Shown here piece after piece: positions 21,540 to 30,342 of a stretch of 64,000 bases of DNA. Position 1 is the first letter of the stretch. Each line of letters begins with the position of its first letter. Below the pieces are notes generated by a model, which was not told where the DNA came from, ran no database searches, and saw nothing but the letters and a program-made list of their open reading frames with translations. Source of the stretch: Ministeria vibrans ATCC 50519 (Eukaryota; Protista; Filasterea); NCBI GenBank assembly GCA_943704425.1, contig CALSCP010002159.1, positions 1-64,000 of the forward strand, given 5' to 3'. Made by a program: the position numbers and the translations under genes.

Positions 21540-23220
21540 ATGTCCGTCAATGCGGAGTATGCCATCGAAGAGGGCGAACGAAGGCCCTTGGTGGACCAGG
21601 CGTGTGCGGATGCCATCAAGTGCACTGAAGAGAAGGCGCCGCCTGCCACCGGCACGTTCTTTGGCAGCACCTTCAACATTGTACGTGTGTGCGCTGTCAC
21701 GGCCCCCCACGGCCCTTTGGCTGCTTACACGCGCCGCATGCACCTCCATTACATCTAGATGAATGCGATTATGGGCAGCGGCATCCTTGGCCTGGCGTAT
21801 GCGGCGCGCGAGAGCGGTGTGGTGCTGTTCACCTTGCTCATGCTCATGATGGTTGCCTTTGCGACGTACGCGTGCATTCTGCTGCTGCGCATGTGCACGC
21901 TGACCGGCAAGAAGTCGTACGAGGCGGTACGTTGACGTGGACTGAGGCCGCGAGAAGGAGAGACGCACCGACCTCCAAACGAGTGACTCCTTCTCCTTCT
22001 TCTTGCTTCCTTATAGATTGGCGATGCTGCCTTTGGACGAAAGGGCGTCATTGCTGTGTCCATCTCCATTTGCGTACAGAACATTGCCGGGGCGACCAGC
22101 TACCTGGTCATCTGCGGTGATCTACTGCCCGACATCATCAATGCGCTGGGACACATTCCGACAGGCGTCACCCACATCTACAGCAACCGTGACTTTCTCG
22201 TGTCGCTCGTGACCGTCTGCATCGTCTTCCCGCTTGCGTCTATGCGGCAGATTGGTCTGCTGGGCTACACGTCGGGCGTTTCTATCTTTCTCATGATCAT
22301 CTTCATGATCATGGTCATCTACGAGCACTCGTACATTCCCTGTCCGCTCAACCCGCTCCCCCCAAACTCCACCAATGCAACTCTCTCCTTCGTGTCTCCC
22401 TCTCTCTCCTCACCCCTCCCCTCTCTTGTCTCCCTCGCCGACTCACTCGCTGACCAGTGCAAGGTCAAGCTTGTCACCTTCAACATCCAGACTGTCTTTT
22501 CATTTCCCACAATGGCCTTCAGGTAAGAGTGACGGAGTGACATACCACACACGCGTGAACACCATCAATTTTTACACTCTCACACACACATTCTGTATAA
22601 TAATAATTATAATTATTATTAGCTTTGTGTGCCACACTGCACTTTTGCCCGTCTACGCTGAGCTCAAGGGGGCGACGGAGAAGCGTATGCAGCGCATCGT
22701 GTACACATCCATGTCCGGCACTTTCCTCATCTACTTCCTCAGTGGCATCTTTGGCTATCTGACTTTCTATGACCAGACGGGGACGGATCTGCTGCAGACT
22801 TATTCGCTGTGGAATCCCAACAACACCTTTGTGATTGCAGTGCGGCTCATGTTTGTCACGGCCGTCATTCTGACTGTGCCCGTGGTGCTCTTTCCGTCGC
22901 GCAAGACGCTCACCCTGCTCTTCTGGGGCTACGACGCCCCGTTTTCTTGGCTACGCCATATGACCATCACCGTCGTCCTTGTCGGCACCTGTCTCATTCT
23001 TGCGCTTTTTGTCCCCGACATTGTCGATGTGTTTGGTGTTGCTGGTGCCACCTCGAGCATTTCGCTTGTCTTCCTCCTCCCTTGTTCCTTCTACCTGCGT
23101 CTGTTCGAGGGTCCCTGGAAGTCCAAAAGGAAGCTTCCCGTCTCTCTGATGCTTGCGGCCGGTTCCGTCATTGGCGTTGTTTGTATTGGCGGTGTCATTG
23201 CGTCCTTTATTGTAACGTAA
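21540..23220 (+). CDS. Amino-acid transporter, SLC38/AAAP family
   Basis: FFGSTFNI|MNAIMGSGILGLAYA, QNIAGATSYLVI, FPTMAF|SFVCHTALLPVYAEL, GYLTFY; multiple TMs. Confidence 0.92.
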
Positions 23221-23250
23221 TAATATAACACACTGTTACGTATCATTTAA

Positions 23251-23361
23251 TCAAGTTCTCTGCGGGCTCAGCGAGAACAACACTTGTGCATGGCTGTTGT
23301 CGTTGGCAAGCGTCACGTGGCGCCTCTCGGGCGGATCGTCGACAGAGACGGTATACTGATC

Positions 23362-23457
<96 letters not shown>

Positions 23458-23564
23458 NNNNNNNNNNNNNNNNNNNNNNNNNNNNNNNNNNNNNNNNNNN
23501 NNNNNNNNNNNNNNNNNNNNNNNNNNNNNNNNNNNNNNNNNNNNNNNNNNNNNNNNNAAAACAA

Positions 23565-23617
<53 letters not shown>

Positions 23618-24160
23618 GTGAGTGAGTGCAGTGTCACCTGCAGAGGGGATCTGCGCTGGATTCGTGCAGCGTAGTAGACATGTACAACCGCGGTTGCTAG
23701 GGTTCCAAGGACCATAGCGCATTTGGTGAGCTGTGTCTCCTTGACAACACTTTGCGAATTCTTTTTTTTTTTTTTTGAAAAAAGACGGAAAACAGCCAAT
23801 GTGAAGAGAGGAATGGCGAGATACCTTTCCGGGAGGGACCTCAATGGTGATGTCGTGCATGACGCCCCACCGCGGATTGCGCTCGTAGCGGGCGAGCCAG
23901 CGGAGTTCATGATCCGTCAGCGATTCGCGCGCCACGCCGGCGTACACACGCTGCGTGACCTCAATCTGGCCACGCATGAGCAGGAGAAAGTCGTCGCTGC
24001 CCTGTGCAAGCGGCAGTGGCTCGAGCGATGGCTCTTGAAGGACCGTGCGACGGTTTGCAAAGGTTCTTCTTCTTGCTTCAGCCGCCTCACAGCGCGCCAG
24101 TGTCTCTCGCGCCTCGGCATGCATCGAGCCGCCGCATTGGCACCAGTTGTCCCTCGACAT
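23251..24160 (-). CDS. Hypothetical protein spanning an N-gap
   Basis: ATG at 24160, GC-rich coding-like exons with GT/AG boundaries. No family recognised. The last exon may belong to another gene. Confidence 0.45.
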
Positions 24161-24253
24161 TGTGAATAAGTAATAATGGTGAAAATTTTTAATAGATGAA
24201 TAGTCAATAGTGCGTCTCATGATTCATCAGAGAATACGGCCACTCGTTGGATT

Positions 24254-24571
24254 GTGTCAGAGAAGCCAGGTATTCACTAACTTCGATGGGGGGGTGATTC
24301 CGCAGTTAAACACCCGCCTGACCAAGTCAGGCCAGACCTGTATGCGTCACAGGCCAGGACAAGTGTCCACTTTGAACTTCCCACCATAGCTGATGGAACG
24401 CGTTGACACACAGATCAACATGACACATGCCTACTATAGGCCTCAGCCAGGCCCCAGACCAGACCCGCTCAAACGCCTAGACCCACCCGCACCCCAAGAA
24501 GGTGTTGCGCTCTCCCATCACTTTTTGGAAACGCGTATGTATGGGCGGGGTCTCTGCGGAGTCTCTGCCAC
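24254..24571. ncRNA. Candidate structured RNA (multi-hairpin, unknown family)
   Basis: GTGTCAGAGA (24254) and TCTCTGCCAC (24562) form a closing helix around 7-8 adjacent short inverted repeats. Lies outside any convincing CDS. Confidence 0.45.
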
Positions 24572-24664
24572 GCGATTGCGTTCAAATTGTCTTTTCTTCT
24601 TCAATTTTCATGGAAGCGAGTTAAATATATTACTGTACACTATAATAGAGAAGTTCAGTGCTAA

Positions 24665-26197
24665 TCAAGAATCATCGTCGTCGGTAAGACCAAAATCACG
24701 CAAATTGGAGCGCAAAATGTCGTCGCGGACTGTGGAGATGAGCAGAGGAACAAATTCATCGTCCAGTTGTGCCTGAGGACAACCTCCCTCGAAGGGCACC
24801 TTCAAATTAGCCGAGTACAAAGCCAAGGCAGGGCTGCGCTGGGCCCACGACATGCAGCGAATGCACTGGAGCAAGTATGTGTTGAGTGTGTGGTTGCGAT
24901 ACGCGCGCACAACCTCACTCAACAGTACTTGTTCCTCCATGCGCCCGCTCTCCTTCTCCTTCCCCTTTTTTGTCTTCTTGGCTCTTCGTCGCTCAATTAG
25001 CGCGAGAAATTCCTCACGGGCGCGTTCATCTCGCTCATCACGCTTGCGCTTCACAGTCTGCTGCAGAGTCATCACACGGCTCACTTTCCCGAGTGCCAAC
25101 GACGGACCTGCTCCATCTCCATTATCTACAACCTCCCCCTCCTCTTCTTCCTGCTCCTCCTCCACGTCCATGCCATTGACATTCCCATACAACTGATCCA
25201 GATGCTCCGCCACGAGAGCACACTCTGTGACGCGCGCGCGTTCCAGCTGGCGTGCAGTTGGGCGAGCACAGTGCCGTCGCTCCGTGCGCTCCAGTCCTTT
25301 CAGCAGCTCGCGGATGGCACGCGTGTCGGGACGCGGCCGCCATGCGAGCAAGTCGTGCTCGTTAAACGCCGAACCACCATCGTCAATGGCGTCATGTAGT
25401 TGCGCACCGTTTACTGTCACGACGACCAAAGAGGTGCACTCACGATGCAAGTTGACCACACCTGAAATCATGCGCAGCTGTTGTGCCGCCCACTGCTGCA
25501 CACCGCGGTATCCGTGCACCACGCCAGCCGCGGCCAATTGCCCCAAGTCCACAAGCACAACCAATTCGCGGGGCGCTTCCACCACACTCGCCGCGATCTT
25601 CCAGTTTGTCGACGTGTTCACACTTGTTGCAGCTGCAACTTCGGCTCCAGCGGCTTCTTGCTCTTCAACATCCTCGAGTGCACCGTTCGGGTCCTTTTCC
25701 ACCGGTGTCGGTGTGGTTGCGGTGACAGGTGCAACAAGATGCAAAGGTAAGTGCTGCGCAGTCGTACCTTCAAAGGAGAGCGGCAGCGACGTGACGTGCG
25801 CAGTTTGCGTGACTTCCCCGGCCATCTGAGGGTGCTTGGCAATCATTTGAAAGAGTTCCGACGAGAGGGTCGTTGGCTGTGAGACGATGAGGATGTTGGG
25901 CGTTTGAGACTTGCGTTCGCGCTCTCGTCGCTCCAAACGTAACATTCGCGAAATTTCACGGTCGCGGCGGATCGCGTCGCGCTCCTCCTCGCTCAAACGA
26001 CAGCGCTGGCACGCCGCTGCACAACAGTGGGGAAGTTGGCAGCAGCAGGTAGCGATGGCCGCGGCGGCGCAGGAGCCAAAGCATGACAGAAAGGACGCGA
26101 AGAGCGCTGGAAGAAAGAGACGCTCAGAGGGCGGAAGGTGCAGCGAATACGAGTTGCGCCGGCGTGCATACCTCCACCGGGGCACATGGAGCCGCAT
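24665..26197 (-). CDS. Highly divergent G-protein alpha-like protein (pseudo-GTPase), intronless
   Basis: Cys-rich N-terminus, CRLSEEERDAIRRDREISRMLRLERRERE (G-alpha alphaN helix) and C-terminal DDEFVPLLISTVRDDILRSNLRDFGL (G-alpha alpha5). G-box motifs are absent. Confidence 0.6.
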   Translation of the reverse strand: MRLHVPRWRYARRRNSYSLHLPPSERLFLPALFASFLSCFGSCAAAAIATCCCQLPHCCAAACQRCRLSEEERDAIRRDREISRMLRLERRERERKSQTPNILIVSQPTTLSSELFQMIAKHPQMAGEVTQTAHVTSLPLSFEGTTAQHLPLHLVAPVTATTPTPVEKDPNGALEDVEEQEAAGAEVAAATSVNTSTNWKIAASVVEAPRELVVLVDLGQLAAAGVVHGYRGVQQWAAQQLRMISGVVNLHRECTSLVVVTVNGAQLHDAIDDGGSAFNEHDLLAWRPRPDTRAIRELLKGLERTERRHCARPTARQLERARVTECALVAEHLDQLYGNVNGMDVEEEQEEEEGEVVDNGDGAGPSLALGKVSRVMTLQQTVKRKRDERDERAREEFLALIERRRAKKTKKGKEKESGRMEEQVLLSEVVRAYRNHTLNTYLLQCIRCMSWAQRSPALALYSANLKVPFEGGCPQAQLDDEFVPLLISTVRDDILRSNLRDFGLTDDDDS

Positions 26198-26612
26198 GTG
26201 GCATAGTCTGAGCAATCCTGAGTGCACGAGCGAAAGCGCGAGTGAACTTGTGCGGCGTCTTCGTCGGCCCACTCGCCGTGCAAGCGGGCATACTGCAGTC
26301 TGAATGAGGGGTGGCGACGTCGGGGCATGTAAAGAAAGTGACTTCACTCGCTTAAGTGACGCAGATCTGCCAGATCAGTGAGATCACAGATGTCAGACAG
26401 ACAATGACTCACTGAGACAGTAATAAACAATTAGACTAGAAATAGGGACTTCGACAATGGGTGGCTTCTGACTTTTGCTCAACCATAATCATGAAAGATT
26501 TAAAATTAATCTAATAACCACACGATACCATTCTTCTTTATTTTCTTACAGATGAGACAAAACTGAAACAATATCGCATTTTTAACAGAGATATATTTCA
26601 AAACAGTGGAAT

Positions 26613-27801
26613 TTAGAGACGACGTCTCTTGGGGAGACGATTCCCATTGTGTGGCATGGCTACGTGAAGGGATCAGTGTGAGAGCGAGTCGATTGAAAAT
26701 GAAGTGCAAATAGAGAGGGGCTTACGTGTAACGTCGGTGACGGACACAACGTCGATTCCGGCTGCTTGAATGCCACGCAGAGCAGTCTGACGACCCTTGC
26801 CAATACCGCTGATAGCCAAACGTGCCTTGGACAGTCCAAACTCGTTTCGCATTGCCAAGCCCAAGGTCATACCACACACTTGCCCGGCGTGCGCGGTAGA
26901 CTTGCGGGTGTTTTTAAAGCCACACGCTCCGGCGGTTTTAGTCACCAGCACGCGTCCCTGAGGCACAGGGTTAAAAGAAAGTGTCAAACAGTGCATATTA
27001 AACGCTCCACAGTCAAATAGACTTACGTTTTTGTCCGTCAGAGTCACACGCGTGTTATTCGCAGTGGACTGTCACATAGAGAGAGAGAAAGAGAGATACG
27101 TTTGAGAGTTTGACAAGGAGAGGAGAAAAAGAACAAGTGCGTGTGTGTAAGAGAGGGTTTGAGAAAGTTCAGAGAGAGAGAGGGAGTAGAAAGAACAAGT
27201 GCGTAAGGGAGAGGTTAAGAGAGTTTGAGAGAGATTGAGAGAGGTTAAGAGAGATTGAGAGAGGTTAAGAGAGTTTGAGAGAGGTTAAGAGAGAGAGGGG
27301 GGGGNNNNNNNNNNGGGGGGGAGAAAGAACAAGTGCGTGTGTGTGAAAGAGAGAGAGAGAGAGAGAGTGTGTGTGTGAGAAAGAATTAAAGCGAAAGTGA
27401 CAGATTGAATTGGACACTTTGCGTTGACTCTCTAATACTCACCCGAATAAGAAGAATTGGGAGTGAATCAGCGGTGGCCACGCCGTGCTTTCCCATCATC
27501 ATGTTAGACACGACAAACTCTTGGGCGGTGTTCTAATTGGAAGAGCGAAAACAGAAAACGCGTTTGAGAAGAAAAAAAAAAGGAAAAAAGAGAGAGAAGT
27601 TTTGTGGAAAGATACAGAAGCAGCATCGGGAAACTCCATGTCGGTCAGCATAGGGTCAAGGAGGAAGGTGGCGGGCTCGTTGAGGTCGAAGGCGGCTCTG
27701 TGCGGCGGTGCGGACGACGCCAGTGATCGCACGGCACACGCCGATCGCACGCCGGCTGCCCGCTGCACGACGCCCGCTCTTGACGCGAGTAATCTCAGCA
27801 T
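26613..27801 (-). CDS. MRPS11: Mitochondrial ribosomal protein uS11m
   Basis: Arg/Ala-rich presequence, STANNTRVTLTD, TAGACGFKNTRKST, GIGKGRQTALRG, VSVTDVT|PMPHNGNRLPKRRRL*. One intron contains an N-gap. Confidence 0.88.
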
Positions 27802-27882
27802 GCCTGTCGTGCGGACCGGAGAAAGACAAATATTACTGACTAAGTAACTATTTAATTTTATTCAATGATCAGAATTCTCAAA

Positions 27883-30342
27883 TCAGAGGGCAAAGAAGCG
27901 ACGTGTGTTCTCGAGGGCGCGTGCTGCGACACACTCGGGGGTTTCGCCCGTTGACAGGGCTATGGCATCAACAACGCAGGGCAGTAGCGCTGGCTCGTTG
28001 TGGCGCACTTTGGGACGGACATTGCGCGGCGCAAGAAACGGAGCGTCTGAGACAGAGTGAGTGAGTGAGTGAGTGAGTGGGTTAGGGAGACCATGTCTGT
28101 ACCCGTTTCGATCATGAGCCGGTCATTTGGGATCTCAGCAACGACCGATCTGAGAGTGGCGCCTCTGCGCTCGTCACAGATCCAGCCGGTGATGCCAATG
28201 TAGAAGCCGCGTTGGCAGTAGGCGCGCATGTGCTCGCTGGAGCCAGTGAAGCAGTGGATCACGGTCGGCGGAAGCGAATCCTATGGTAATGAGTATACAA
28301 GTAAGAGAGTGGGCGAGTGAGGGGACGGTTGGTACCTTGAACTCATCGAGAATGGCAACGAGGTCGTCAAAGGCACATCGCTCGTGGAGAAACAGGGGCA
28401 TGCGGAGACGCACAGCCAGAGCCACCTGATGGCGAAACCACTCGCGCTGCACCGCTGGCGGGGAAAAGTTGCGGTCATAGTCGAGTCCACACTCGCCTGC
28501 GCACGGGAAATGTGTGAGACATTGCACACATACACACACATACACACACACATTATATATACAAATAATATATATACACAAGTTCGAATGGGAGTGCAAA
28601 AGAGGAAGAGAGTGTGCAAACGTGTACGTACCAATTGCAACCACTCCGGGTTTTCGTGCAAGTTCCTCCAGCGTAGACAGAGTCGTCGCATTGCAGGTCC
28701 TAGCAAACACACAAAGAAAATCAGAGCAAAAAGTGCAGGGACACAATTAGAAAACAAGTACAGATACAAATACACTGCATGACGCACTAATTTAAACTCA
28801 AACGACCACACACATCCCTCCCTCAGTGTCTATCCCACGTACTTTGCGTCGTGCGGGTGCACCCCTGCAGTCGAAAACACCCTGCCCGCAAACCGCTCAG
28901 TGAGCAGTGCACACGCCCGACTCCCCTTCACACTTGTTCCTGTCGCAATTACCCGCGACACTCCTACTGCATTCGCTCGTGCTACACAGCACACACACGC
29001 ACACACAGATACACAATGCAACAGTTAATCAGGATTGCTTCGTGTGTTCTCTCAAAATACCTAAAACGGACTCTGTGTGTGTTCCGTCCAGTGGGTGATG
29101 CGTCAAATTGCTTCCAATGTCGATCATTTCAAAGCGGTTCTCAGTGGGAGCAGCACAAATTGGAAGAGAAGGCAAAGAGGAGGAGGCAGAGTCCGTTGTC
29201 GGGTGGGACTGAGAAGCACTCGTTGCTGCTGCTACTGCTCCTTTGCCTTTCTTCCCTTTGCCCTTTCTGGAGGGCCCCGCTTCCTCTGACCCACTCGCAC
29301 TCGCACCTGATGTGAATGTCGCAGTGACGGTTGCACCGCGGGACATGAGCGCTGTCAGAATTGAGCAAATGTTACGCGAGTCGTCTGTACGCAAACCCCA
29401 AAACAAACACCGATGAGTAGCGTTCAAAAATCCACGGATGTAGGTCTTCTCACCAATTCCTCTGTGGTGTGTCCCGACGAGAGGCAGACCCAACTCGCGC
29501 AACATGTTGTCCATTCCTTTGGCATTGGCGCCTGTCACACGATTGAACACTTTCTTGATGTTGACCCACTCGCGAAAGTAAGTGGGAACCGCAATGTTGA
29601 GCCGTCTGAGTTGTAGCGGTAGCTACAAGAACACACATAGTCAGTGGAAGCATATATACATTACAACGTGTTACACTGACACAATACATACGCACTCACT
29701 GAAATCTCACTCACTCACTCACTCACTCACTCACTCACTCACTCACTCACTCACTCACTCACTCACTCACTCACCATTGTCTTCAGATCCCAGTCTCCGC
29801 ACGTGACAAACACACACGTCTTGCCCTGCGCGAACACATGGTCGTTGAGGTGCGCTGTGTGCTGCTGGAGCACATCCGCAAAGAGAGGCGCACCATCCAC
29901 TTGGTCTTGTCGGATGCTGGTGAGCTGGCGGCAAAACGGGGACAGCTTTGGGTGCAGTTCGGGGCGGACAAAGCTGGCAAACTCCATCTACGCCGCACAA
30001 TAGGGCAGTGTGAGGGACAGAGTGTGTTATGCAACCCACTCACACTCAGCTGTGGTTGTTATGCAACACACACAAACACGTCTCTGCGTACCTCGTCGCA
30101 TCGACGGCCCGACACAGCATCGTAGAACACGGTGGGAAACTCAATGATCTCCATGGCATCGCGGCTAAGAGGCGGTGGAAGGATGATCGGCACTGCTGAT
30201 CGCACACTGATCGCACAACCTGATCGACTTTCCTTCTTTCTTCTTACCTCGGTTCGCCTTTGGTTTTCCCCTCCCAGCACGTGGCTTCAAAGTCAAGCAC
30301 TGCGTAGTAGTCGTATGGTTGCTTGGGAGCAGCAGACGCCAT
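27883..30342 (-). CDS. ERI1-family DEDDh 3'-5' exonuclease fused to a TatD-family nuclease
   Basis: YAVLDFEATC, EIIEFP, FVRP..P.LS.FC..LT.I.Q, TCGDWDL, HHRGIDDSRNI, then in the same exon MIDIGSNL. Later exons give TAGVHPHDAK, IGECGLDY, LFLHER, IHCFTG, GITGWICDERRG, IETDAPFL, NEP. Confidence 0.88.

Follow-up and report, generated by a model that had tools for sequence, protein, structure and literature searches.

The window, a stretch of 64,000 nucleotides from one contig of Ministeria vibrans (CALSCP010002159.1), belongs to an assembly of 29.7 Mb in 2860 contigs from an intron-bearing eukaryote. Its genes are animal-like; among them are HPS5, F-box proteins and a receptor kinase that carries an ephrin-receptor-like repeat. 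The gene analysed here lies on the minus strand and is read without a stop from an ATG at 26197 to the stop codon at 24665-24667. Directly upstream lies a ribosomal protein gene with two short GTAAG..YAG introns (69 and 66 nt), whose stop is found about 415 nt ahead of the ATG. The features of the locus are listed below, with positions given in the window and residues counted from the ATG at 26197.

26612-27047, minus strand: ribosomal protein S11-family gene (PF00411, E 1.4e-15), directly upstream on the same strand
24665-26197, minus strand: whole open reading frame of the gene under study, 510 codons plus stop, supported by its codon-usage score
26107-26171, minus strand: candidate GT..AG intron of 65 nt within the first 30 codons (GTATGC, pyrimidine tract, CAG)
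26000-26119, minus strand: residues 27-66, where a hydrophobic stretch gives way to nine clustered Cys (sequence scan)
25883-26002, minus strand: residues 66-105, G-alpha-type N-terminus (Cys66, alphaN helix, beta1-like strand NILIV), matching the first exon of the C774 G-alpha gene
24779-25882, minus strand: residues 106-473, orphan middle of about 370 residues with no similarity to G-alpha or any family
24938-25162, minus strand: residues 346-420, in which an acidic run with a net charge of -9 leads into a basic helix with one of +9 (sequence scan), the charged insertion of an earlier note on this DNA
24686-24778, minus strand: residues 474-504, G-alpha-type C-terminus (end of beta6 and alpha5, ending in NLRDFGL), matching the last exon of the C774 G-alpha gene
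24668-24685, minus strand: residues 505-510, acidic tail TDDDDS, which takes the place of the one hydrophobic residue that ends canonical G-alpha

Upstream of the ATG the frame stays free of stop codons as far as 26347, which yields an open frame of 560 codons. With the Pfam-verified genes of the same window taken as the reference for codon usage, the reading frame scored +0.18 bits per codon and the other five frames were all negative. In a sliding window, the coding signal started at about residue 50 and lasted to the C-terminus, and was weak over the first 50 codons. Because an open frame of about 560 codons carries this in-frame, genome-like codon-usage signal, it is no chance ORF. The compositional traits pointed out in the earlier note were all recovered: the Cys-rich N-terminus contains nine Cys in residues 39-66, the charged insertion corresponds to a charged stretch at residues 300-420, and the acidic tail is the TDDDDS found at the C-terminal end. 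An Rfam scan of 22000-28000 found nothing; the segment 24254-24571, just downstream of the stop, had no match at E<=0.1 and may be the 3' UTR of the gene. A long GA/CT dinucleotide microsatellite at 23313-23625 is broken by an N run (assembly gap), and GA/CT tracts and N gaps were likewise observed within introns of two G-alpha genes of the organism, on contigs C774 and C2090.

The genome encodes canonical G-alpha three times (contigs C774, C434 and C2090), in genes with several short introns each. The C774 gene is the Gq/11-like paralogue; it appears to start with MPLCGGG, without Gly2, and C434 starts with MGLCGG. Ric-8 is also present, with a sole match at C388:27917-28321. A weak PF00503 match on the same contig, considered as a possible fourth G-alpha, proved to be exon 1 of an ordinary GTPase of the Arf/Arl type (C388 segment 55500-59700, minus strand, about 1680-2250 of the segment). 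No G-gamma (PF00631) was detected in a six-frame scan, which is uninformative for a gene so short and split by introns.

Searches of the collections did not assign the protein to any family. Neither the whole protein nor any of four pieces matched G-alpha (PF00503) in Pfam at E<=10, and the locus was not listed by a PF00503 scan of the organism's own genome. Pfam and NCBIfam matches to LigA and to a taurine ABC subunit were at chance level. No relatives were retrieved by a word-index search, by phmmer against 1.84 billion representatives or by a metagenome scan, and a protein search of the organism's own genome returned no paralogue. One gene on contig C122, examined as a potential paralogue, was discarded as CHCH/Mic19-like (CHCHD3-like), having a charged region alone in common with our protein (HMMER E 0.06); its ORF lies in C122:135-2021, minus strand 1294-1803, and ends in twin Cx9C motifs. 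An exact look-up of the protein was blank as well, in collections that do not hold this organism's own proteins: there, the organism's own G-alpha fragment matches only proteins 55-74% identical to it, and the neighbouring F-box protein has no near-identical match. Since the organism's own proteins are missing from these collections, the blank searches mean that an orthologue is not detectable in any sequenced relative, and they are silent about expression. Searches of the organism's genome with the two terminal pieces returned the locus itself alone, a single first-pass candidate, so that they provide no genome-wide ranking.

The protein was compared exon by exon with the three canonical G-alpha genes. 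Using tblastn against these loci, residues 69-105 aligned with the first exon of C774 at 43% identity and residues 474-504 with its last exon at 42% identity. The Smith-Waterman scores against the same two exons were 71 for the N-terminal segment and 64 for the C-terminal segment. Neither was reached in 2000 shuffles of either partner, for which the means ranged from 24 to 30 and the standard deviations from 3.5 to 4.7 (24.6 and 3.6, respectively, for the C-terminal segment). On the first exon, C774 scores slightly higher against our protein (71) than against its own paralogue C434 (69). On the 31-residue segment of the last exon, our protein shares 13/31 identities with C774, against 9 with C434 and C2090, the three canonical paralogues sharing 14-16/31 among themselves. 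The protein also retains all the invariant or near-invariant alpha5 positions of a Gi-class alignment, namely V, D, I, I/L, N, L, G and L.

An independent profile was obtained by turning an alignment of Gi/Gt/Go-class sequences from other species into an HMM, which was run with filters off. On the whole protein it gave exactly two matches, profile positions 3-32 on residues 66-95 and 328-353 on residues 479-504, with a whole-protein score reached by 2/2000 block shuffles. Taken alone, the N-terminal piece scored 8.2 bits and the C-terminal piece 4.2 bits, and in each case 0/1000 shuffles equalled the score. Alignment with a G-alpha profile by hhalign placed residues 66-106 on positions 3-40 (P 0.007). 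The two terminal matches are thus collinear and fall at equivalent ends of the same G-alpha gene, C774. The parallel with G-alpha-q that the earlier note had drawn for the N-terminus is borne out by the Smith-Waterman score and by the PDB matches described below, its claim of a G-alpha-like C-terminal end by the Smith-Waterman score and the background comparison, and a kinship with the Gq/11-like paralogue C774 in particular by tblastn, Smith-Waterman and identity counts. As for a profile match to PF00503, it was absent in Pfam and over the core of the protein, the terminal modules alone matching the Gi-class HMM.

In the aligned terminal segments the third codon positions, of which 12/31 and 3/18 are identical, are randomised, and the synonymous sites between the gene and G-alpha are saturated. 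Amino-acid similarity at the level of paralogues, combined with randomised third positions, points to a long-term constraint on the two ends: their split from G-alpha is old, and their amino-acid identity appears to have been maintained.

Between these ends, residues 106-473 gave only low-complexity matches when compared with every exon of the three G-alpha genes. Their score with the Gi-class HMM was no better than chance, 95-187 of 1000 shuffles being equal or higher. The middle did not beat its shuffles with a profile from which the helical-domain columns had been deleted, nor did any of the sub-blocks beta1-alpha1, switch I to beta5, beta4-beta5 and alphaG-alpha4 tried separately. Regular expressions found no Walker A P-loop GxxxxGK[ST] in the protein, even in a loose form, and no DxxGQ (switch II), [NT]KxD or TCA/CAT (TCAT) motif. 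Residues 105-112, at the position equivalent to the P-loop, contain neither Gly nor Lys. The earlier note had stated that no GTP-binding motif was left, and every G-box motif is indeed absent. It had also lined up internal segments with G-alpha at the P-loop position, switch I/beta2-3, beta4 and beta5/NKxD; these never scored above shuffles, whether the profile included the helical-domain columns or not. Neither the presence of a helical domain nor the clean deletion that it proposed could be seen, since the protein resembles neither the helical-domain columns nor the exons that encode them and the profile lacking these columns gave no gain, and the G-alpha scaffold or retained Ras-like fold that it assumed yields no Pfam or HMM signal in the core and AlphaFold2 pLDDT values of 35-40.

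Because all the guanine-nucleotide-binding motifs and any recognisable Ras-like or helical domain are lacking, the protein is predicted to be unable to bind GTP or to switch in the canonical manner. Nor is it a member of the G-alpha family, since the core features that define this family were searched for and are absent.

Single-sequence AlphaFold2 models reached a mean pLDDT of 40 for the whole protein and 35 for residues 95-345, too low to be used. These low-confidence models display an alternation of strands and helices over residues 100-272, a weak hint of a fold, and long charged helices over residues 292-465. A PDB match to Roadblock/LC7 (PF03259) at residues 113-163 (E 0.6-1.4) was rejected, as it has no counterpart in Pfam and the organism's own Roadblock gene is dissimilar. 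Finally, a protein-atlas search based on language-model features set residues 98-345 beside small-GTPase families only (RagA, Arf, Ras/Roc, IFT22 and Arl16), with scores of 0.83-0.85 that lie below the 0.9 line and make this a lead rather than a finding.

The middle may be a Ras-like domain too diverged to be recognised, or it may be of foreign origin. In the latter case the gene would be a mosaic, in which Gq-like first and last exons were captured, for instance through exon shuffling or the duplication of part of a gene, and came to flank unrelated or new sequence. The middle would then never have been Ras-like, and would form a charged, partly disordered scaffold bearing two G-alpha helices. 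The limits of similarity do fall within a few residues of the end of C774 exon 1 and of the start of its last exon, but these exon ends coincide with beta1 and beta6, so that the boundary match is not independent evidence. The lack of any G-alpha signal in the middle even after removal of the helical-domain columns, its long charged helices and acidic low-complexity runs, and the lack of G-alpha relics or of any frameshift-relic signal in the other reading frames of the locus are all consistent with a mosaic. The atlas lead towards small GTPases and the strand-helix alternation of the models argue in the other direction. On balance we hold a mosaic origin to be possible but doubtful.

Another reading makes the protein a natural, membrane-anchored and nucleotide-free minimal G-alpha, reduced to the Gq helices that face the receptor and G-beta-gamma, which would occupy activated GPCRs, G-beta-gamma or Ric-8 without signalling and would thereby act as a built-in dominant-negative regulator. 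To our knowledge a G-alpha-derived regulator of this kind is undescribed in Holozoa. The mini-G proteins (e.g. miniGq) are engineered G-alpha subunits that lack the helical domain, keep the Ras-like GTPase domain and stabilise active GPCRs. Our protein resembles them only on the model of the earlier note, that of a G-alpha minus its helical domain presenting alpha5. The minimal G-alpha reading as a whole appears unlikely to us.

The similarity of the ends could also be fortuitous, an unrelated lineage-specific protein having a charged N-terminal helix and an amphipathic C-terminal helix that mimic those of G-alpha. The two segments were scored against real six-frame peptides (138,000 residues). 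For the N-terminal segment, 71 is a modest excess over the 62 attained by charged background peptides, and its charged composition inflates the score of alphaN; for the C-terminal segment, 64 stands far above the real-sequence maximum of 38. A search of the PDB (177,635 distinct sequences) with the N-terminal piece gave E-values of merely 0.1-3.6, yet the best 10 matches were all G-alpha N-termini (Gz, Gq, G11; E 0.1-2.1), and those with native numbering begin at Cys3. The same search with the C-terminal piece gave no G-alpha match. Pfam was blank, and a genome-wide protein search did not return the G-alpha exons. By our own estimate, each terminal match taken alone would have a genome-wide E of roughly 1. 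The weight of the case therefore rests not on the single matches but on their joint and ordered placement at the true ends of one G-alpha gene. A fortuitous mimic is further opposed by the retention of every conserved alpha5 position and by an end similarity on a par with that of true paralogues. We thus regard a chance resemblance as quite improbable, and consider it highly probable that both ends are akin to G-alpha.

A retrocopy of a Gq-like G-alpha gene, without function and in decay, would account for a single-exon ORF beside intron-rich parent genes, for the missing core motifs and for the orthologues that searches did not detect, but it is very improbable, since a neutral copy so diverged would have lost its frame of 510-560 codons and its genome-typical codon usage and would not hold ends at paralogue level with third positions saturated. 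The earlier note had taken the intronless structure as a sign of a retrocopy origin. The gene does consist of a single long exon, whereas the canonical G-alpha genes of the same genome are intron-rich; the retrocopy origin itself is unsupported, the synonymous sites being saturated and no hallmarks of retroposition being left.

The reading that we prefer, with a probability of about 0.5, is that of a real, old and lineage-specific gene, of Gq/11-type G-alpha descent at least at both ends, whose product would be an adaptor or a competitor at the membrane. Judged by sequence, the protein retains the Cys at the palmitoylation position, alphaN, beta1, and alpha5 with its conserved motif, the N-terminal elements being preceded by 65 extra residues. 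These residues, ahead of the G-alpha-like Cys66, are Arg-rich at first and continue with a hydrophobic stretch (Kyte-Doolittle 1.86 across 19 residues) and the Cys cluster. Residues 27-66 are a candidate S-acylated, membrane-embedded anchor preceding Cys66, and the protein probably sits on the membrane.

The exact start of this extension depends on the candidate 65-nt intron, which resembles the 69- and 66-nt introns of the neighbouring S11 gene. If it were spliced, the frame used upstream of it would be a different one and the start would move to the ATG at 26187 (or 26328). With the former, the N-terminus would begin with MCPGG and be shorter, hydrophobic and Cys-rich as before. Compared with canonical G-alpha, a hydrophobic Cys-rich extension of 65 residues (37 if the intron is spliced) replaces MG(C).

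In the adaptor or competitor reading, the hydrophobic Cys-rich N-terminus would hold the protein at the cytoplasmic face of the membrane. There, independently of nucleotide, it would expose the two helices that G-alpha turns towards its receptor, G-beta-gamma and Ric-8, here the putative partners, and would serve as adaptor or competitor in the organism's heterotrimeric G-protein system. A decoy role, as proposed in the earlier note, is one that the protein may play; an alphaN helix without switch II is a weak binder of G-beta-gamma. The conserved alpha5 motif is present near the C-terminal end, but where the organism's own G-alpha genes stop right after GLV or GLA, our protein adds six mostly acidic residues past GL. 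Such residues speak against a C-terminus that inserts into a receptor in the canonical way, and the tail may block canonical receptor docking.

With canonical Gq/11 G-alpha (PF00503), of which the organism's own C774 is the nearest, the protein has in common the Cys, alphaN, a hydrophobic beta1 and the alpha5 pattern V-x-D-x-I-L-x-x-N-L-x-x-x-G-L near the C-terminus. It differs in having no P-loop, switch motifs, NKxD, TCAT, detectable Ras-like or helical domain or Pfam match, and in possessing about 370 orphan residues and a six-residue acidic tail past GL. It shares the loss of G-box motifs with the pseudo-GTPases, G-domain folds devoid of their nucleotide-binding motifs, a category to which IFT22 and Arl16, the atypical small GTPases of the atlas lead, presumably belong; the G-domain fold of our protein is hypothetical, and its language-model proximity to small GTPases is weak.

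The plant XLGs are G-alpha-derived proteins with a Cys-rich N-terminal extension that have lost nucleotide cycling, act independently of nucleotide on G-beta-gamma and RGS, and retain, in the C-terminal half, a domain still recognisable as G-alpha-like (PMC8584482). Our protein resembles them by its Cys-rich N-terminal extension, and they provide a precedent for a nucleotide-independent G-alpha derivative competing with canonical G-alpha. It is unlike them in that no G-alpha domain could be detected and no orthologue was found. The G-alpha-like domain of XLGs includes the helical domain, and XLGs are conserved across plants. Outside plants, we know of hardly any G-alpha derivatives without a nucleotide switch.

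Few signalling proteins are as conserved as G-alpha subunits, and a conservation confined to their two ends, as seen here, is surprising. Should the gene prove unexpressed or unconserved, it would be the curiosity of one genome. If it is expressed, alphaN and alpha5 have been kept under constraint long after the GTPase core was lost or replaced, and would have a nucleotide-independent job of their own. The gene would then be a natural test case in which the receptor-facing side of G-alpha acts alone, in a lineage from which the beginnings of animal GPCR signalling are reconstructed.
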